From: Fonticula alba ATCC 38817
Taxonomy: Eukaryota > Protista > Nucleariida
Strand: one strand, 5' to 3'
DNA: 64,000 nucleotides
NCBI GenBank assembly: GCA_000388065.2
Contig: KB932204.1
Shown here: piece after piece, positions 9,455 through 21,400 of the stretch
How the letters are laid out: every line of letters begins with the position of its first letter
How positions within the stretch are numbered: position 1 is the first letter of the stretch
Notes under the pieces: model-generated
Seen by the model: the letters and a program-made list of their open reading frames with translations, nothing else
Databases searched by the model: none
What the model was told of the DNA's origin: nothing
Made by a program: the position numbers and the translations under genes

Positions 9455-11543
9455 CAAGGACAATATGATCAACAAACACAATGGCAGTGCAGCAGTAGCA
9501 GCAGCGGTGCCGAAGGCGAGACAAGAGAGGAAACCTCAAAGAGAGGAATGTCCGGGTGCTTTGACGTACGGCGTCAGCGTATCCATCATGGAGAGGCAAA
9601 TGCGCGTGCTGGGGGCCATGCCGGCGGCGGCGGCACCACCGCCATAGGCATCCGAGAAGGACTGCATCTCGGAGGTGATGCTGATCAAGTGTGCCACACG
9701 GGACTCCTCGAGCTCGGGCAAGGCGCACGGAACCAGCTCAACGCCAGTTCGATCGCGCAAAATCCTCAAGAAGGCGCGAGGACCCTCAACACAGGCACTC
9801 TCAAACACATGGCGGAAGTAGTGCCGCGGGATGCCGATGCGCACGCCGGCCAGGCTGCCGGCCAGAGTGTCGGACTTCAGACGCAGGGCCGCGCGAACCC
9901 CGGCCAGATGCGGAGTCGGCTGCAGAGACACCACCGGATCGACGCCAGCCGGGTCGGGGCCTGCCATGGCCAGGTACCCGGCGGCCAGGTCGGCCACATT
10001 CGTGGCCAAAGGGCCCGCATGACCGACCGAGCACACCAGCGGCACCGCCCCGGCCTCGGAAACCCGGCCGAAAGTCGGCTTCAAGCCCCAAATGCCACAG
10101 AAGGAGGCCGGGATGCGGACCGACCCGCCGCCATCGGCTCCGACTCCGAGTGGGCACAGCCCGGCCGCCACGGCGGAGGCAGTGCCCGAGGAGGAGCCCC
10201 CGGTTGCGAAGCCCAATGCCCGGGGATTGACCGGGGTCCCGTGGTGAATGTTGGTCCCGGTCACGCCCAGTCCCAGCTCATGCATGTTCGTCTTGCCCAC
10301 AAGCAGGGCCCCAGCCCGACGGAGGAGGGCCACGCATGCTGCCTCCTCCGAGCCTGGGGTGTCCCCCTGCAGGCCGAACTCCCCCGGGGCCCCGGTCAAG
10401 ACGCATGAGCCGCCCGTCGTCAAGGGATAGGCACTCTGGCGGAATTCATCCTTCACGCATACCGGCACTCCATCCAGCGGAGAGAGGGGGCTGCCAGCGC
10501 GCCAGCGGCTGGCAGATGCCTCGGCCTGGGCCAGCAGGTCCGCTTCATTGATGGCCACGAAGGCACGGAGGTTTTCCCCCGCAGAGCCCTGAGCACGAGC
10601 CAGGAAGGACTATGATTCCCGGCCGGCGCGCAGACAGGGAGGAGCAGGTTAGAAAGAGGCCACTCCCGCCCTCCCACCCGCCTCCCCCTCAACAAAAGCA
10701 CCGGAACCACGCCCCCTGATGCCCTTCCCACACGAACCTTGGCCACGTCCACTGGCGAAAGCTTGCCCGAGGCATATAGAGTACGCAGCATGGCCGACGT
10801 TTCCGGGACAAAAGTGCCCTCAGATGCGCCAGATGGGACCCCAGGAGGGGCTTCCTCATCGGCAAACAGGTCGCGCAGCTGGCCCAGCGGGCCCCTGGCA
10901 GCTTGTGTCTGAGCCAGGGCCTTCTGAGCATGACTGCATGAGTAGCACCATCATGCACAAGCAGGGGGGCAAGGGGCGCGGTGTGTGTGTGTGTGTGTGT
11001 GTGTGTCCACTCGCAGGAGTTAGGCCTTTGTGGAGCATGTGGTCCCAGGGAGTGGGCGCCGTTTGAAACGCACGTCGGAAGAACCAGAGGGAGGGCCGAG
11101 GGAGGGTCGCGTGGGCCGGTCTGTCGGAGGAGGAAGAGCTGGCCAAGTGGATTGCCCCGTGCACATGTGGGTGAGTGTCTGTGTGCGGACAGGCGGGAGG
11201 CTGACAGGCTGACGCATCCCATGCAGGCAGAGAGGATGCGAATGAGGACAAGCGTGTGTTTGGCGCGCACGTTGCTGTCGGTGGACAGGCGGTTCTTCAC
11301 CGGGGGGACGGTTTCGATGACCGGAGCAGCCAGGTCCAGCATCTTGCCGAAGAGAGATGGAGCATAAATATCCTGCAGGTCATAGGGGACGGCATCTAGC
11401 TCGGCATCGGTCGGGTCGGCTCCTCCATCGGGCAGCCAGTGCGTCAGGTGGTGATATGCATTGTGGGCCTGGTCAGCTGGCAAGGCCAGGATGTCCTCCA
11501 GGGCTGGTGGGCGGGCCTCATCACCAGGGGCAACCATGATCAT
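8702..11543 (-). CDS. Amidase-signature enzyme, fatty acid amide hydrolase-like
   Basis: Exons 11543-11271, 11138-11074, 10933-10738, 10609-9570, 9287-8702 join in frame. Catalytic Lys (VPVCVKDE), GGSSSG, DGGGSVRIPAS, GLKPTFGRVS, ANLTGVPSIVVP. Confidence 0.92.
9330..9456 (-). repeat. Intronic compound (CTG)n/(TTG)n trinucleotide repeat
   Basis: CAG runs interrupted by CAA and TGG on the + strand, inside amidase intron 9288-9569. Confidence 0.9.
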
Positions 11544-12408
11544 CCAATGGGGGGGAGGAGGGGGCGCAAGAAAAGGGCAGGGAATGGGGAGGCGAAAGGG
11601 GGGGGGGGGGGGGGAGGAGAACCTTGAAGCGGCATCCTGCTCGTCGGTGCGCCGCCAGTCCTCTTGCAGAAGACTTTCCCCCTTGCACCGTCAGCCCCTT
11701 CGCCGACCACAGATGTAATAAGGCTCGCACCTCGCCGCTTCGGCTGCCTCTCAGAAGGCCGGTCATTTGCAGGACCTTGCCGCGGGGTCCCCCCCCTCCC
11801 GAGAAAATGCAGAAACTCCTGTGCGGAGGAGGTGAGGGATGCCCCTTGCGGTGCCGGCGAGACCGGCGGTCCTTCGCCGGCCCGTGTGGTGTTCGTCATG
11901 CCTGACCAAACCGACGCCCAAATCGGCCGCCCTTTTGGGGCGCAGCCCAGCTGGAATCCCACGTCCCCTGGTCGCCGCGGCTCTTGAGAATCCTGGCGCC
12001 CAGGGGGGAGGGGGTAGGCAGGCATCTGCCCCCCCGCCGCCCGGGGAGGCCAAGCAGCTAGGGAGGGGTCTCAGTTGTTCGCCATGACCGTGGGATGCTG
12101 CCAACGCACAAGACGCGCCTTGTTTACGATCTAATGGGTTGGCACTTGGGCGCCGTTCTCCCCTGGTCCCCCGAGCCCTTGCCTGTGCTTGGCACACACA
12201 CACACACACACACACACGCGCGCGTCCGGTCCGCCGGGTTTACGTCCCCCCCGGTGAGGAGGCCCGCCCGCGGCTCGGGCTCGGGAGAAGCAGCATGCTC
12301 GATCTCCTCGCCACTCTCACGACGAGGGCCCACCGCTCGGGGGATGACCATGTGTTTCTCTGCCAAACATGCAGTCTCTGGGCCTCTGGGCCCGGGTGGG
12401 CGAGAATG

Positions 12409-12478
12409 TGGCCGTGTGTGTGGCCGTGTGTATGGCCGTGTGTGTGTGGCCGTGTGTATGGCCTTGTGTGCGGCCGCT
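12409..12478. repeat. Degenerate 12-14 bp tandem repeat (tggccgtgtgt-r) in the amidase/MTRR divergent intergenic region
   Basis: About 5-6 units visible directly. Confidence 0.75.
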
Positions 12479-12724
12479 AGTTTGTCATTTGGGACGGCAT
12501 TCACCATGTCACGGACCACCGACGACACACACCCCCCCCCCCCCCCCCCCCCCCCTGAACGCCAGCCCCCATTTAATAATTGAACTCCGCCGCTTCTTGG
12601 GTCATTGTCACGGATCCCCCCCCCCCCCCCCCCCCCTCCTCACCCCCTCCTCTCCGCCTTCACCTTTTCCCTCGCCGAGTGTTCTGCGCGCCTCTTTGCC
12701 CTCCTCCCCTCCCCACTCGGCCCA

Positions 12725-15700
12725 ATGACCGCCGACCCTCGGACTCCGCCGCCCAACGCGGCTCTCTATGTATGGTATGCGTCGCAATCTGGCAACGCCG
12801 AAAGCATCGCCCGTGGTCTCGCTGCCGAGGCTACCTCCCTCGGCTACCAGGTCACTACTAGCTCGCTGGATGATTCTCCCCTGGTCCGTGCTTGGCCGCT
12901 CATGGCTGTGTTCTCTCCCCCTCTATATATATCTCTCTCTCCTCCTTCCGGCCGGCTGACACCCTGCTCCCTCTTCCCTGTCTCTGCTCGTGCATTTTAC
13001 TGGGCCTTTCTCTGCGTACATGGCCCGGGTGTCCATCGGGCATCTGCAGGTCCGTAGCAACGCCGAGTCCAGCCGGCATCTGGCGGTGATCGTCTGCTCG
13101 ACAACCGGCGACGGCGAGGTCCCGGACAACGGAAACCGCTTCTACCGGAACCTGCGCAAGCGCACGCACGGCCCGGCTGCCTTCAGCCAACTCACCTATG
13201 GCCTCCTTTGTCTGGGTGATACGAACTATGATTCCTTCTGTGGCGGTGGGCGCCGGCTCAAGAAGGGTCTCGATCGGCTGGGTGCGGTTGAGCTCTGCCC
13301 CATCGGGCTGGCTGATGAGGTGACTGGGTATGTAAAAATGTCGTCCCTTTGCCATTCCCCTTTCTTCCCCCTTCTTCTCTCTACTAACACACACTCTCGC
13401 AATCACGCCCATCACGCCCATCACGCCCATCACGCTCTTGCTCACTCAGACTCGAGACCGTCATGGACCCCTGGGTGGCTAACATGTGGCCGCGGCTGGC
13501 GGAAGCCGCGCGCGCGGCCCTGCCCCCCGGCTGGTCCGAGGATGAGCTCAAGTCCGGGACCGAGGCTGCTGCTCAGCCTGATGCTGCCTCCGCGGCGGCG
13601 GTCACCACGCCCGAGGTGGCTTCCCCTGACACTGTGGCCGCCCCGATGACTGGCACTTTCACATGTGACATCCCAGCTGGCACCATGGGTGTGGCAGTTG
13701 TGCCGCCGATTGATCCGGCCCTGCCGGGGCTCCCACGCCCGGAGGACCCGGTCCTCACGGAGCAAGAGCATGATGCTTGGGCTGCCAAGCTGGGTTTGCC
13801 GCGCTTGGCGGTTCCCCGGTCGGTGGCCATCTCTGTTGGCCGGGCCCCACGGCTGAGCGCCCTTCGACTGCATCCAACCATTGCCGGGGGGGCCCCGGCC
13901 GATGGTGCGCCCATCCGCTGGCGGCATCTGGAGCTCGGTACCATGATCCCTGTGGCCGCGCGCGTGGCCACCGCCCCCGGGGCCGTGCGGACGACCATCG
14001 AGCTGGCCTTGCGCATTGGCGACGGTTTTGGCGGCTTCGAGGCCACCGGCGAGCCGCGCCATGCTCCGGCCCTTGAGACTGGCAATGATGCCCACCTGAG
14101 CCGCTGGCGCGGGGGCGATGCCATGGGCATCATTGCTCCCAATGATCGGTCCCTGGTGCTTGCCCTGTGTCAGCGACTTGGCGTGGACCCGCGCGAGCAG
14201 TTCCAGCTGGTGGCCCCGAGCCAGGCGTCCGCGCCGGCCGAGGAGCTTGCCGCCGCGGAGAACCCCCTGCCGCATGTCCCCTCGCCGGCCACCGCGCATG
14301 ACATGCTTTCCTTCGGGCCGGAGCTGCGTGAGATGCCGCCGAAGGCGGCGATCCGGGCGCTGGCGGCCGAGGCCCCCACCGGGTCCTACTCACAGCGGAT
14401 CCTCCTCTTCCTGTCCAGCCGCTCCGGGGTGGCGCTGTATAATGCCTGGCGAGCGGACTTCCGGCCGACGGTGCTGGATCTGCTGGCCCTGGCGCCGGAG
14501 TGTCGCCCTCCTCTGGCCCGGCTGCTTGAGATCCTCACGCCGCTGACGCCGCGGTACTACTCGGTGGCCGGGTTTGGCCGGTCGGCCGAGCCGAATGACC
14601 GGTCCGTCGTGCGGGTTCTTTTCAATGTCCTTCGCGATCAGACACCGGCTGGAGCCGCGCGCGCTGGCCTGGCCACCACTTGGCTGGAGGGGCTGCTCGG
14701 GGGTCCCGGGGCCCTGGCGGCCGGGCCCTTCGCCGAGCAGCCGGCCTCGCTGGTCGAGGGCCCGGAGCTTGGGACCGAGGTTCGCCCCGGCGGGGCGCTG
14801 GATGCCTCATGCGATTGGTCCCAGCTGGCTGGGCATGATGGGCAGCCGCTGCCGATGCCGGAGCTGGCGGCCTTCCTCCAGCCGTCGTTGCACTTCCGCC
14901 TGCCTCCGGCCGGGCAGGAGCGTCGGCCGCTGGTGCTTGTCGGCCCGGGCACCGGGGTGGCTCCTTTCCTGGCCTTTTTGCAGGAGCGCATGGCGGCGCT
15001 GTCCTCGCGCGGCCTGTTGCTTAATGCCGGGCCTGATGGGGCGCCGGTTTTCGGTCCGATTGTCATGTATGCCGGCTGCCGGGGCCTGGATGTGGACCTC
15101 CTCGGGGCGGATGTGCTGCTCAAGGCCCTGAAGGCCGGGGTGTTGACCCGGCTGTCGGTGTCGGTGTCGCGCCAGGCCGGCCCACCGACCGGGACCCTGG
15201 CCGATGCGCCGGCCGGGTCCCTGCTGGGGACCGTGCATCATCTGCTGGCCCATCCGGCGGTGTTTGTTCGATACGGCGCGCATGTTTCCCATGCCATCAG
15301 CCTTGATGCTGACATTCTCCAGCCGCTGCTGCTGGGCGCGGGGCTGTCGGACGATGGCGGCCCGGACGCCGCGCGGACCTACGTCTGTGGGTGCGTGCTT
15401 GGTTTGTTCTTCCCCTTTGTCCCTCCACTTCTGCCAGGCCGTGCTGCCATGTGTTTCCTTCTGCCCTGGTGTCTTTTGTTGCCCCACTCCGCCATCCGGC
15501 TCCCCTTTTTGAGGCACGCTTTTAGGCTGACATCTTTCCCGTCCATCACAGCGATGCCGCGGCCATGGCAACCGGCGTGCGTCGGGCCTTTGCCGGCGTG
15601 CTTGCCGGTGTTCGAACCTTCGCCGACAGTCTCCCGGCCCAGGAGACCCTGGAGCCGCTGGGGCCGGAAGATGAGGCCTCCGTGGCCGAGAATCTCACGG

Positions 15701-15753
15701 CCATCCTCCAGTGGACTCGGCGCCAGCGTTACGTGCAGGACATTTGGACTTAG
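12725..15753 (+). CDS. MTRR: Methionine synthase reductase (diflavin oxidoreductase)
   Basis: Exons 12725-12883, 13050-13327, 13450-15390, 15552-15753. FMN motifs YASQSGNAE, CSTTGDGEVPDN, LGDTNYDSFC; DEVTGLETVMDPW; FAD motif PRYYSVA; VGPGTGVAPF; YVCGDA; C-terminal RYVQDIWT. No membrane anchor. Confidence 0.85.
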
Positions 15754-16253
15754 AAGAGGGGTGCCACTTGAAGCGGGAATGTCGGCCTTTTTTGCTGCCC
15801 CCCCCCCCCTCCTTCACTTCCGTGTGCTCCTCCTCGTCTCGTGCTGGGCCACGAAATCCCATGGGAAATGCAAGTGTGGACCTTCCGTTTGCTCGTCCCT
15901 CCCCCTCCCGCGCATGAAGTATAGAACCCCCATGACCACACAAGAGCCGTTTCCTTCCCCCACTTGCCCCCTCCCATTCCCCCTCCCGCAGAAGGAGCAC
16001 AGCCAAGTCGGCCCGTCTAGGCGGGGAAGAGGAGGTGGTAGACCCGAATATTGGGAGATGACAAGTGTGCTGAGCAAATGCGGAGGCCATGTAAATATAT
16101 ATACATCCATGCATGCATGAATATGTGTGAGCACGAGAGGGGGAGGGAGAGGGAGAGAGAGAGAGAGAGGGAGAGAGAGAGAGAGAGCACCAGACCCATC
16201 TATCAAGGGTAAGGTCAAGGGAAAAGGGTAAGAGGAACCCCCAACACCCTGCT

Positions 16254-19200
16254 TCACTCGGAGGAGTCGGTGGTTTCGGCGTCGGCAATGAGCAGCCACT
16301 CCGCAAAGCGCAGGAGCACATGGCGGAAAAGACCGCCCTCGGTGGCGCCGGGTCGGGTGCCAGGAAGAATGATGGGTGGCAGCTGGGCCCACGAGTGGAA
16401 GGCATGCTCATCGACCACCTCCTGATCGTAGAGCTGGTGTGCCAGCAGGAGGATCTCCTTGGAGCCGGACCACAGGCCGAAGGCGGCACTCCGCTGGCAG
16501 GCGGCCACTTCCTCGGGCGAGGCGCCCGCCGGGGGCAGAGGAATGACCGCCGCCTCGGCGGCCTCCAACTCAAGCAGGAAGGAGATCTGCAACGAGGGGG
16601 AGTTGATGAAGCGCCGGATGAGGTCCAGGCGTTGAGTGAGGATGTCCCCGGCGCCGGGGATCGGCTTGTCCGTGGTATTCCGGCGTTCGGACCAGACAAT
16701 GGCCTGGATCAGGCCGCCCAGGAGGACGGCCTGCGAGCCGAGGGCCGTGGCCGAAGAGGTGGCCCCCGAACCGAGGGCCGAAAAGGAGCTGTGCGCCGCG
16801 GCAATGTTCCGGTACAGGGTGTTGGCATTCGGCGACTCGAGAGTCCGCGCGTCCAGCAGATAATGTGCAAAGGAGGTGGCCGGCCGGCGGGAGGCATGCA
16901 CTGGCGAAGGGCGCGAGGGCCGGGAAGGGGACTCGGTGGAGTCGTCGTTTCCGGCGGCGGCGGCGGCCGACCCAGCACCGGCACCGGCACCGGCACCGGC
17001 ACCGGCACCGGCACCGGCACCGGCACCGGCACCGGCACCGGAGGCGGGGGCACCGGTGCCCCCGAGACTGAAGGATTGGAAGAGGGTTTCCAGCTGGGTG
17101 GGGGCTTTCCCGGGGGAAGGAGCAGCATCAGCGGAAGTGGAGGTGGAAGACCCCCCAGTCATTGGGGCCAGGGGGGTGCCGGAGGCAGGGCGCCGAGGCG
17201 CCGAAGCACTGCCAGCCGGGAGGGATCCCGATGGGGGGGTCTTGCCGGGGGGAACCGACGTCGGGAGGGGAGGCGGGCGGGACCGGGCCCCGGGAGTCGT
17301 GGGCAACAGATTCAGGAACAACGGGGACGAGGCAAAGGCCGATGGGGGTGCCACGGGGGTGGCCGGGGCGGACATCGCGGCCGCAGACGAGCCCTTCGCC
17401 ACACTGGGGCCCGAGACGGAGCTGGCCGCCGAGGTGGAGGACCGGGCGCCCGGGGAGGGCCATTGGGCATGGTTGCTGGAGCTGAGTGGCGAGTCGGCCG
17501 GCGAGTGGCCAGAGGAAAAGGCACGCCCCGGCCGGAGGTCCCGGCGATCGTGGCGGAAGTCCCGATAGTCGCGACTGGTCTCGGTGTTGCTCCGGAAGTC
17601 CCGGGCCCCGTCGATGCCATTGCCGCGGAAGTCTCGGCCGACGTCGCTGCTGCGGAAGTCCCGGCCATCAACCGCGCCGCGAGGGTCGCGCGCATCGCCG
17701 GCACCCCGGAAGTCCCGGCCATCGATGGGACCACGGAAGTCCCGGCTGCTCTCGGGACGGCTGCCAGTGCGGAAGTCACTGCGGAAGTCGCTGCGGAAGT
17801 CGCTGCGGAAGTCCCGGTGACTGCTGCTGATGCTACCGCCGCTCCCGCGGAAGTCCCGAGAGGAGTCACGGCCATCGCGGGTGAAGGAGGCGGGCGGCTG
17901 GCCGGGGCTGGGCGACCGGTGTGAGCCGAAGGGATCCATATGGCTGGCTCCTGCGCTCGACTGGGGACGAGTGGGGGCACGGGTGGATGGGCCCCGACCG
18001 GGTGGCATGGGGCGCAACTCGCCTGGGCCGTGGGCATATGGACAGGTCCGGCCTCGGGTACACACGCCGGAGCGATCGAAATTCTGCGAACAGGGGAGAA
18101 GTCGCCATGAGGAAGCCGGTCAGCAAGAGGGAGATAGAGAGGAAGAGAGGGAGAGGGGGAGAGAGGAAGAGAGGGAGAGGGGGAGAGAGGGAGAGGGGGA
18201 GAGAGAGGGAGAGAGGGAGAAAAATGGGGCAAGGATGACAGGCAAACCCCAGGACGCACTCGACAGGCGCTGGTCCGGTATGTGCGGCTCGCAATCTGCT
18301 GGTCAACCTCCTGAGTAACGACAGGCGGAAAGGGAGGGAAGAAGGGGAGGGGAGGGGGGCAGGGGGTTGGTAAGTAGGAGGGAGGGAGTGGGAGAGGGAC
18401 AGAGAAAAGAAAGTGTCCCAAGACCCTGATGATCAGCAGGAGACACACGCACGGGGCTGAAATCACAGAAAACATAGCCCTCATGAAGGCGGCTGCCAAT
18501 CATCTCCGAGCAGAACTGCCCGAAGAGAGTTCGAATATTGCTGTATGTAATGCTGAGAAGGCCGGAGAAGGCGCGGGGGGCGCACATCAAAGGGCGAGGG
18601 GGAGGAGGAGGAGGGGAGGAGAAGGTGAGCACCGGGGACAGGGGAAGAGGGAGGGAGAAGGGGTCCATCAGCCAGGCAAGGGAGCACACGCACATCTTAT
18701 TGACGTCAGCCATGGGGCGCCACTGAATCCTGACATTGTTCGAGTCGGGGATGAGCTTCAGCGAGGTGCGGAAGCTGGCATGAGCCAGAAAGAAGGTGAT
18801 CGGACTGGTGTCTCCGCTCTCCGTGAGAATGCTAGGGAGGGTGGCGGGTGAAGCAGCGGTAAGAATCGGGCACGGGGGCACATGTGCGAGGAACCAAAGA
18901 CCCCAGGGGAGGCAGGGACTCGAGCGGTGGGGGAGCGAGGGGGGGGGGGGGGGGNNNNNNNNNNGGGAGGGAGGGAGGAAATGTACCGAGAGCTCGAGGG
19001 GGGGACATATTCGATGTGAAGGTTGCTGGAGGAGAAGCCAAAGAGCTCCTCCACCTCGCGCACTACCGAGGAGAGGCAGTCGGCCGAGGGGCGCACCGGC
19101 CTGGGGCAGGGCGAGGCACAGCGATGGGGGGAGGAGCACACGTAAGTAAGTGCACGGGGAGGGGGCAGATGAGCGCGGACCAGGCGGGCGACCGACAAAG

Positions 19201-19506
19201 GCAGGGCAAGATGCGGCGCGCAACGAACACCTTGGGGAAGAAGAGCTGGGACGACGGATCGAAGGGATCATAGCAGAGGAGAAACTCCACGAGACCGCGA
19301 TCGAGAATCTCCGCCGGGCGGAAGCGCGCCGGCTGGGTGAAGCGCTGTGCGAGGTTACCGGGCGCTGGCGCGCCGTCAGAAGAGGCAGAATAGTAGGGTG
19401 AAGCGGGGCTGTGACCGGCGACGGCCGAGGAGGGGATGGATGCGCTGGGGTTCACACGGTAGATGATGAGGGCAGAGTACTTCTCCGTCGATGAGCGATG
19501 GTCCAT
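16254..19506 (-). CDS. Putative RNA-binding protein: RRM-like N-terminus + CCCH zinc finger + low-complexity region + C-terminal W2 domain
   Basis: Six inferred exons; first junction uncertain; last exon 18083-16254. RNP1-like EGYVFCDF; spliced finger YRTSAC-RNFDRSGV-C-TRGRT-C-PYA-H-GPGELR; W2-like AHQLYDQEVVDEHAFHSW..RFAEWLLIADAETTDSSE. Confidence 0.8.
16975..17040 (-). repeat. (GGTGCC)11 coding hexamer repeat encoding poly(Gly-Ala)
   Basis: gcaccg x11 on the + strand. Confidence 0.95.
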
Positions 19507-21400
19507 GGTGTGCGTGCGGGGGACGAGTGAAAAGACGGGGCGGGGGAGGAGGGGGGAATGGAGGGAGGGGGAGAAGGAGGGGGAGGAGAGAGAGGGTGGG
19601 GGGGGGGAGGGGGGCGGAAAGTGGGGCAGGGGGGGGTGTTGGGAAGAAGTAGAGAAGGCGGGGAGAAGAAGGGAGAGACCTCGGCCCAGTCGGTGCTGGC
19701 GCGTCGCCGCTCGCGGACTCCGAGTCTGCAAAGGGACTTTTCAGGCAACACCTTGCGGCGGGGGGGGGGGGGGGGGGGGGGGGGGGACCCGGGGCCCCCC
19801 CCCCCACCCCCAACCCCCCCCCCCCGGGGGGGGGGGGGGGGGGGACGGGGCGGGACACCGGGGTCCTCCCCCCGATCACCAGACCCCATCGCCCGAGGAG
19901 GGGCCGGGGGATCGGACGGGGACCGGACAGGGGGTATCCTGCCGAGTGGTCGGGCGGGGGCGGGTCGCCCGCCCACCCGCGCGCGCGCGCGCGCCTGTGC
20001 GTGCCGTAACCTTGCGTCAAGGACCACGCAGAAGAACATCTTTCAAGACGGGACGCGCCACCAATCCCCGCCCGGCTCGGCGCGCGTCCCACGGGCAACA
20101 CCCGGCCCCTTCCAAGAGCGACCCTGGGGGTATCCCTGTGCAGGACAGGGAGGCCGGGGGGCGGGGGGGGGGGCTGCCCAAGATGACATCGAAGTGTCGA
20201 GAAGCGGGGACGGCCAACTGTGCGTGGTCTGATGGGGGGGGGAGTCCTGCGCGAGGGCAGCAAGGCGTGCCTAATGACATTAGGTTCTGCCTCAAGGGGA
20301 GCGCGCCCCGGGCCCGAGCGCCCTCACCATCTTCCCGCGGTAGATTGGGACTCACAACCGAGGGGAGGGAATAATTGGTTTTTAATAATCGGCCGAACAA
20401 GCAAGCAGGGCACCTTCACGCAGTTTCGCGCCCATTTCTCTCGCTCTCTCTTTCTCCTTCTTTGGCCTCGGGGCTTTATGGATTTTGTCGCATCCCCTCG
20501 GACCGCCCTCGGATATTGGAGCCCGGTGCCTGGTGCCGCGAGACCCCCCTACCCCTTGGTTGTGCCCGCTCGGGGGGGAGGGGGAGCAGTGGAGGGGGGG
20601 CACATTCGCACAGGAGGGCGAGATGGCGTTCGCGAGAGCCCCTTCCTCCCCCACACTCTCGGACCTGGGAGGTCAAACATTTTCCCCTATGGCTAATGGC
20701 TACCGGCGTTAGATCACAGTGCCTCGGCCATGGCCGCCGAAGCGCGAAAGCCCCAACGGAAATAGGCTGCCACCCCCGGAGGTCAGGGCGTCTGGCGCCC
20801 GATCGTTGGCTCTTGGAGGGTCCGGCCCGAGGGCAGCATAATGCTATTTCATCGCCATATGCCGACGATCATGTCACTTCCATGCGGGGCACGCCGGGGA
20901 TCTTCTTCCCGGCCCCCCGGCTGCGCCTGGCTCGGCCATCGGACGGTCTTTGTAAGACACCCCGAAGCCGCAGGGCCCTCCTGTGGCCCCCCCCCCCCCC
21001 CCCTCCCCCGGCTCGTTGCTTGGCCGGGAGGCCACGCGTTGGATCCCGGCCGAGGGTCCACGTTTTCGAAACTCTGGCGCGTTATCCCTGTGTTCACCTG
21101 CCCTTCCCCTCCCTCGGCCTTGCGTCTGCCGGCGGCTGGCGGGGGGCCCTCGGGATTGTGTCTCCTGCCCCGAAGGCGGCGGCCCATGGGGTGGGGGCAG
21201 GCAGGCAGGCGGGAGGCCGACGCGGTGGGGGTCTCTGCGGCAGCGGCCACCGCTTCAGCCAGGGGGGGGGGGGGGGGAGGCGCCAGCCGAATAGCCAGCA
21301 CCCAGGCGCCCCTCCGGGGGCTGCCCGGTGGGGCTGGGCAGCACCCTTCGCTCTCCCCTTCCTCCTTACCCTCCTCCCCTACTCGCTACTCGGTTCTACC

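Follow-up and report, generated by a model that had tools for sequence, protein, structure and literature searches.

A Fonticula alba gene joining a TTP-type CCCH zinc finger to a probable C-terminal W2 domain: a candidate RNA-binding adaptor of translation initiation

A 64,000-nucleotide stretch of contig KB932204.1 from Fonticula alba ATCC 38817 (assembly GCA_000388065.2), here called the window, contains a minus-strand gene at 16254-19506 whose 836-residue product carries a TTP/TIS11-type CCCH zinc finger and ends in a domain that, judging from sequence comparisons, is very probably a true homologue of the W2 domain of translation initiation factors. It is a real, lineage-specific gene, a new combination of known modules and a single-species orphan. 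An earlier note on this DNA had described it as an RRM-CCCH-W2 fusion in one gene; of this architecture, the finger and the W2-like domain stood, partly within a single exon, and the RRM was not confirmed. An RNA-binding adaptor linking mRNA to initiation factors would be the best explanation of the combination, a proposal held here at about even confidence. The gene limits called by NCBI coincide exactly with window 16254-19506 on the minus strand, and the NCBI product has no Pfam family on record, the gene being annotated and uncharacterized.

The zinc finger lies about 225 residues from the N-terminus, where the join of exons 5 and 6 reads TYRTSAC-R-NFDRSGV-C-TRGRT-C-PYA-H-GPGELR, with the spacing C-x8-C-x5-C-x3-H. 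The last eight codons of exon 5 (18283-18260, within an exon spanning 18260-18310, minus strand) supply the TYRTSAC lead-in and first Cys, and the start of exon 6 (18030-18083, minus strand) supplies the remainder, C-x5-C-x3-H followed by an HG..EL tail. The 30-residue exon 6 piece alone matched PF00642 (zf-CCCH) with 24.6 bits, against a cutoff of 20.5, over profile positions 8-27; positions 1-7, absent from this match, are exactly those supplied by exon 5. The best PDB matches of the finger were TTP (1m9o, E 2.7e-5), the C3H1 protein 9y10, TIS11d (1rgo, E 2e-4) and Unkempt. The TTP-type finger with a YRTxxC lead-in proposed in the earlier note was thus confirmed by profile and structure-database matches. 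Because its last three ligands share exon 6 with the C-terminal domain, the pairing of CCCH and W2 modules needs no assumption about splicing. The tandem TTP/TIS11 family is defined by two fingers placed 18 residues apart; no second C-x8-C-x5-C-x3-H was found in any exon translation, the last-exon frame having one such stretch, and with its single finger the protein is therefore not a member of that family. A U2AF35-like arrangement of UHM and finger was rejected, as no U2AF chain occurs among the PDB matches of the finger.

The C-terminal 211 residues (16257-16889, minus strand) constitute a putative all-helical domain. This piece matched PF02020 (W2) with 28.8 bits and E 1.3e-6 over profile positions 18-78 of 79 (window 16266-16484), the match stopping three residues short of the final one, and the whole last-exon frame matched the same family with 26 bits (E 9.5e-6). 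Two conserved Trp (motifs HSW and AEWL) stand in aromatic/acidic boxes at the extreme C-terminus, in LYDQEVVDEHAFHSW (box 1) and in FAEWLLIADAETTDSSE, which runs up to the stop codon; the second Trp has the context FAEWL and is followed by an acidic Ser/Thr tail. The last 75 residues, which are the W2-matching part, include 11 acidic and 4 basic residues, and the G+C content at third codon positions (GC3) across the domain is 0.74-0.90 in frame. In the ESM Atlas, 26 of the 30 nearest clusters were W2 clusters (score 0.93), and the ten best matches that carried a family were all W2, with 203 of 256 features shared. A phmmer search of the PDB with an 88-residue query returned eIF4G1 as its sole match, with LYDQEVVDEHAFHSW aligned to LYDEDVVKEDAFYSW at E 0.12; box 1 matches human eIF4G1 at 11 of 15 aligned positions. 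AlphaFold predicted helices only, at low confidence, with eight of them in the 211-residue piece. In one Foldseek list against the PDB, W2 structures occupied ranks 1, 3, 7, 26, 30, 31, and 43, all with E>0.2, and included the eIF2-eIF2B complexes 9hve and 7f66, the eIF2B-epsilon catalytic fragment 1paq, DAP5, and eIF4G1. W2 was the only Pfam family listed at E<=10 for the C-terminal 211 residues, which gave no match to MIF4G or to HEAT domains of 5MP/MA3 type (PF25504, PF02847); the last exon gave no 5MP HEAT match either, nor did the PDB sequence search return any eIF5, eIF2B-epsilon or 5MP chain at E<=10. These comparisons weakly suggest a W2-like domain closer to the eIF4G/DAP5 type than to the eIF5 type.

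Between the finger and the W2-like domain lie two stretches of biased composition. The finger is followed by a presumably disordered zone some 170 residues long and enriched in R, D, S, G, and F, in which twelve D-[FY]-R units occur, predominantly as RDFRG or RDFRS (17553-17855, minus strand); part of this zone is encoded by a 12-nucleotide tandem repeat at 17768-17813. Next comes a linker of some 200 residues, in which A, S, P, and G are frequent; it includes an in-frame (Gly-Ala)11 run encoded by a hexanucleotide microsatellite (16975-17041, minus strand). The microsatellite is a perfect (GCACCG)11.2 located in a coding exon, and its length is likely variable between strains.

Searches for relatives in large protein databases covered the C-terminal 211 residues. 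A HMMER search of 1.84 billion representatives found no relative at E<=0.001, a word search returned nothing at E<=0.001 or at E<=10, and metagenome contigs yielded nothing. The gene's own NCBI product was likewise not returned, though that of the neighboring gene H696_03156 is present in the collection; the absence of a self-match is therefore uninformative, and the absence of any other match means that those collections hold no orthologue with a recognizably similar W2 region. An exact-product look-up with the last-exon open reading frame, started at its first ATG, gave no recorded match, and the literature searched yielded no account of a protein that combines CCCH with W2, with or without an RRM. 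Papers on Fonticula translation, or under the inferred neighboring locus tag, likewise offered nothing of relevance. The statement of the earlier note that no known protein shows this combination thus held, in that neither a described family nor relatives of the W2 region came to light.

The RRM was the part of the proposed fusion that did not stand. It had been placed in the region from VRIQW to EGYVFCDF, with a possible second RRM upstream. Searches were run exon by exon, the candidate domain spanning exons 3-5 in different frames, and no RRM family in Pfam matched any exon or in-frame read-through piece at E<=10. An ESM feature comparison of exons 3 and 4, read through the intervening intron 3, gave nothing, and phmmer matches of exons 1-3 in the PDB were at chance level. 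The sole PDB match of exon 4 (18453-18552, minus strand), which holds the candidate core IRTLFGQF .. EGYVFCDF and has no Pfam match, was the RALY RRM with a non-significant E of 1.7; this alignment covers helix 1, strand 2, and RNP1, up to strand 3 (..IRTLFGQF..HEGYVFCDF..). The RRM was thus not confirmed, the likeness going no further than the pattern, and the second upstream RRM found no support at all. If an RRM-like module is present, it would be degenerate and would directly abut the finger, where a normal fourth strand would not fit.

Known W2 domains have several partners. Those of eIF5, eIF2B-epsilon, and 5MP use their aromatic/acidic boxes to bind eIF2-beta at its lysine-rich N-terminus, those of eIF5 and 5MP bind eIF3 too, and that of eIF4G binds Mnk (PMC3201852). 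The W2 of DAP5 binds eIF2-beta by means of a glutamate, at the place of which eIF4G1 has a lysine (PMC9945437). From the architecture of the Fonticula protein we infer RNA binding, a partner for the W2-like domain, and an effect on initiation in one direction or the other. The finger would bind single-stranded U/A-rich RNA, perhaps aided by the degenerate RRM-like module just upstream, and self-association driven by the repeats would perhaps contribute to RNA selection. The W2 HEAT domain would dock a partner from the initiation machinery, the known W2 partners being eIF2-beta, eIF3, eIF1, and a Mnk-type kinase; this partner would be brought or sequestered, and the bound mRNAs would be repressed or favored at initiation. 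The earlier note had suggested an mRNA-targeted eIF5 mimic or adaptor. The label of eIF5 mimic proved too specific, since the W2-like domain resembles box 1 of eIF4G1 and not eIF5 or 5MP, and since no HEAT domain of 5MP or MA3 type was detected.

Several results weigh against the adaptor proposal and the W2 assignment on which it depends. The W2 score lies 1.2 bits under the Pfam gathering cutoff of 30 bits for PF02020, and box 2 is only weakly acidic. Single-sequence AlphaFold models had unreliable predicted local distance difference test (pLDDT) values of 39.5 (211 residues) and 47.4 (158 residues). No Foldseek match reached E<=0.001, a second Foldseek list was without W2, and the ESM Atlas shape search was not significant. 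Searches with the C-terminal 211 residues found no orthologue showing a conserved architecture, and a lone TTP-type finger binds RNA weakly. It could accordingly be argued that the protein ends in an orphan helical domain with no relation to W2 and that the profile match is spurious, a reading to which the score under the cutoff, the lack of sequence relatives among the 1.84 billion representatives, the low-confidence models with a fold list free of W2, and an ESM 'recognition' of 1762, versus 2300 usual for known families, would all lend weight. This reading is nevertheless considered very unlikely: the E of 1.3e-6 extends across 61 of the 79 profile positions, the match ends three residues before the C-terminus as in every W2 protein, the ten best family-carrying ESM matches with their 203 of 256 features are all W2, and the top match of the independent PDB search is box 1 of the eIF4G W2. 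The C-terminal W2 of the earlier note is probable, given the Pfam E, the 26 of 30 ESM clusters, and the two Trp, with a score of 28.8 bits where Pfam sets 30. A fault in the gene call itself, either two genes (an RNA-binding part and a W2 part) fused by the annotation or an unrecognized intron that removes part of exon 6, is likewise considered very unlikely. The roughly 370 low-complexity residues that separate the finger from the W2 module would suit it; against it, C-x5-C-x3-H and W2 lie within one open frame of 609 codons with a GC3 of 0.64-0.90 throughout, NCBI calls a single gene, and four small runs from 2012, their type guessed as RNA, are compatible with an mRNA containing all of exon 6. 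In each of these runs, 0.74 of the words sampled from 16150-18950 are present, and the share of 31-letter words expected for a spliced mRNA with all of exon 6 is 0.72-0.76, an indirect agreement; annotation and frame continuity are what argue for a single transcript.

If the W2-like domain is accepted, its role may still be read differently. The protein could be a TTP-like or splicing-factor-like mRNA-binding protein in which the HEAT tail is a generic interaction module with no role in initiation, docking for example a kinase, or decay or splicing factors, and in which the RDFRS repeats have the part that RS/RD domains play in nuclear messenger ribonucleoprotein (mRNP) proteins. The finger is indeed nearest to the decay factors TTP and TIS11d, R/D/S-rich repeats are present, and box 1 is nearest to eIF4G1, whose W2 binds Mnk and not eIF2-beta (PMC3201852, PMC9945437). 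All described W2 domains, on the other hand, belong to translation-initiation proteins (PMC3201852), 26 of the nearest ESM clusters belong to the W2 of initiation factors, and the protein has neither a NOT1-binding motif nor a run of RS dipeptides; this alternative, while worth serious consideration, is rather unlikely. The protein might instead supply W2 in trans to an eIF5 devoid of it, as the rear half of a 'split eIF5', and thus be a general initiation factor with no mRNA selectivity. That a W2-like domain is borne here by a separate protein would fit this scheme, which is considered quite improbable; against it stand the match of LYDQEVVDEHAFHSW to eIF4G1 and the lack of any eIF5, eIF2B-epsilon or 5MP chain at E<=10 by sequence. 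An mRNA-selective variant, in which W2 docking has moved off eIF5 onto the CCCH protein and assembly of the eIF2/eIF3/eIF1 multifactor complex is delivered by, or restricted to, the bound mRNAs, would be a similarly long shot. The RNA-binding adaptor remains the preferred explanation.

So far, descriptions of W2 are confined to initiation factors, whether core ones or mimics, namely eIF4G, DAP5, eIF5, eIF2B-epsilon, and 5MP. Its presence on a TTP-type finger that reads sequence would amount to a natural tethering of initiation-factor docking to particular mRNAs, and a CCCH-W2 protein would be useful both as a compact tool and for testing how W2 contacts control start-site selection. If W2 docking were in fact relocated, the gene would provide the function of the eIF5 C-terminus in a split form tethered to mRNA; it bears on whether the Fonticula eIF5 works without a W2 of its own, and would be of high interest if this link holds.

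The exon model was built by reading the minus strand together with the frame-specific G+C content at third positions. Over the whole coding span (16254-19506, start codon 19506-19504, stop codon 16256-16254) it comprises six exons, which join into 2511 nucleotides, i.e. 836 codons and a stop, with no internal stops and a length equal to that of the NCBI product; the codon-position G+C bias tracks the frames of the model. All five introns are of the GT..AG type, with lengths of 128, 155, 141, 142, and 176 nucleotides and CT-rich interiors. The extended donor GTGCGT occurs in three of the five (starting at 18259, 18452, and 18693, minus strand). Exon 1 (19229-19506, minus strand) holds 92 codons and 2 nucleotides, begins in the context caccATGG, and encodes an N-terminal part of no recognizable family, with no Pfam match and at most chance matches by phmmer in the PDB. 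Its donor, 19229/19228, was selected to give the annotated 836 residues, so that the agreement in length checks exons 2-6 as a set; the donor is not independently proven, because it was picked for this fit and GC3 periodicity continues to about 19180. A donor at 19231/19230 was rejected for its wrong phase, and those at 19193, 19181, and 19142 fit the phase, yet 836 residues were obtained only with 19229/19228. Exon 2 (18987-19100, minus strand) has an in-frame GC3 of 0.84, phases that agree with exons 1 and 3, and no family match. Exon 3 (18694-18831, minus strand) has strong codon periodicity and no RRM match, and ends in VRIQW..DVNK, which the earlier note had taken as RNP2. Exon 6 (16254-18083, minus strand) is the single uninterrupted frame described above, its GC3 remaining within the stated range over the entire length.

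Intron 2 (18832-18986, minus strand; GTACAT..CCCTAG) is the only intron containing N, a gap at 18955-18964 within a poly-C run that touches no coding base. Since exon 3 supplies the third base of the codon that exon 2 leaves incomplete (phase 2), the frame is independent of the gap length; a hidden exon, with a length that is a multiple of three, may lie in the gap. Intron 3 (18553-18693) has a length of 141 nucleotides, divisible by three, and reads without a stop in the frame shared by exons 3 and 4, such that its retention would add 47 residues and leave the frame intact. Intron 5 (18084-18259, minus strand; GTGCGT..CGCAG) interrupts the zinc finger and is CT-rich, with a CT-rich, low-complexity core at 18142-18226. 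A minus-strand frame of 382 codons at 19451-18306 is wholly open despite spanning several introns.

The window has a G+C content of 65.5% and eight assembly gaps, and its positions 16254-19506 are letter-for-letter identical to positions 11530-14782 (minus strand) of L001, a region of contig KB932204.1. The 836-residue gene is convergent with the diflavin reductase gene H696_03156 and divergent from an EF-Ts gene located about 1.9 kb upstream. The reading frame adjoining it, 13463-16117, matches NCBI 'hypothetical protein H696_03156 [Fonticula alba]' at 100% identity. H696_03156 (window 13463-16120, plus strand; L001 8001-11029) is diflavin reductase-like, with Flavodoxin_1 and FAD_binding_1 domains, and has no NAD_binding_1 domain on record, in contrast to its Coemansia relatives. 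Its NCBI gene span corresponds to window 12725-15753, thus beginning about 740 nucleotides upstream of the start of the window open reading frame and stopping about 370 nucleotides short of its stop; the product is annotated with 859 residues, versus 885 for the window frame. In the 5' intergenic region between the 836-residue gene and the EF-Ts gene, homopolymer runs of G and of C, of about 25-30 bases each, occur at 19760-19845, and may reflect a problem of assembly quality or some unusual feature of the promoter region.

Among known systems, the TTP/TIS11 (ZFP36) proteins share with the Fonticula protein the spacing C-x8-C-x5-C-x3-H, the Y-[KR]-T-x-x-C lead-in, and the H-G-x-x-E-L-R tail of the finger. 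They differ from it in having a tandem pair of fingers in place of one, and the Fonticula C-terminus is W2-like, with no NOT1-binding C-terminal motif seen. The D-[FY]-R repeats may be likened to the DRYG-rich region found in eIF4B or to RD/RS regions such as mRNP proteins have, and we take the likeness to eIF4B to lie in a possible RRM followed by short Asp-Arg-aromatic-Gly repeats, represented here by the twelve D[FY]R units. In contrast, eIF4B lacks both a CCCH finger and W2, its RRM has no confirmed counterpart in the Fonticula protein, and no sequence match between the two was obtained. The Fonticula protein may also be compared with 5MP1 and 5MP2 (BZW2 and BZW1), being like them a non-catalytic W2 carrier that could compete for W2 partners (PMC3201852); the 5MPs lack an RNA-binding finger, and in the Fonticula protein box 1 is eIF4G-like and no HEAT domain of 5MP/MA3 type was detected. 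Known W2 proteins carry upstream MIF4G, MA3, eIF5 N-terminal or NTP-transferase parts that do not occur in the Fonticula protein, where a CCCH finger and low-complexity repeats take the upstream position and box 2 is less acidic. With the W2 proteins eIF4G1 and DAP5, it shares a C-terminal domain, putatively helical in the Fonticula protein, ending in two-Trp aromatic/acidic boxes.

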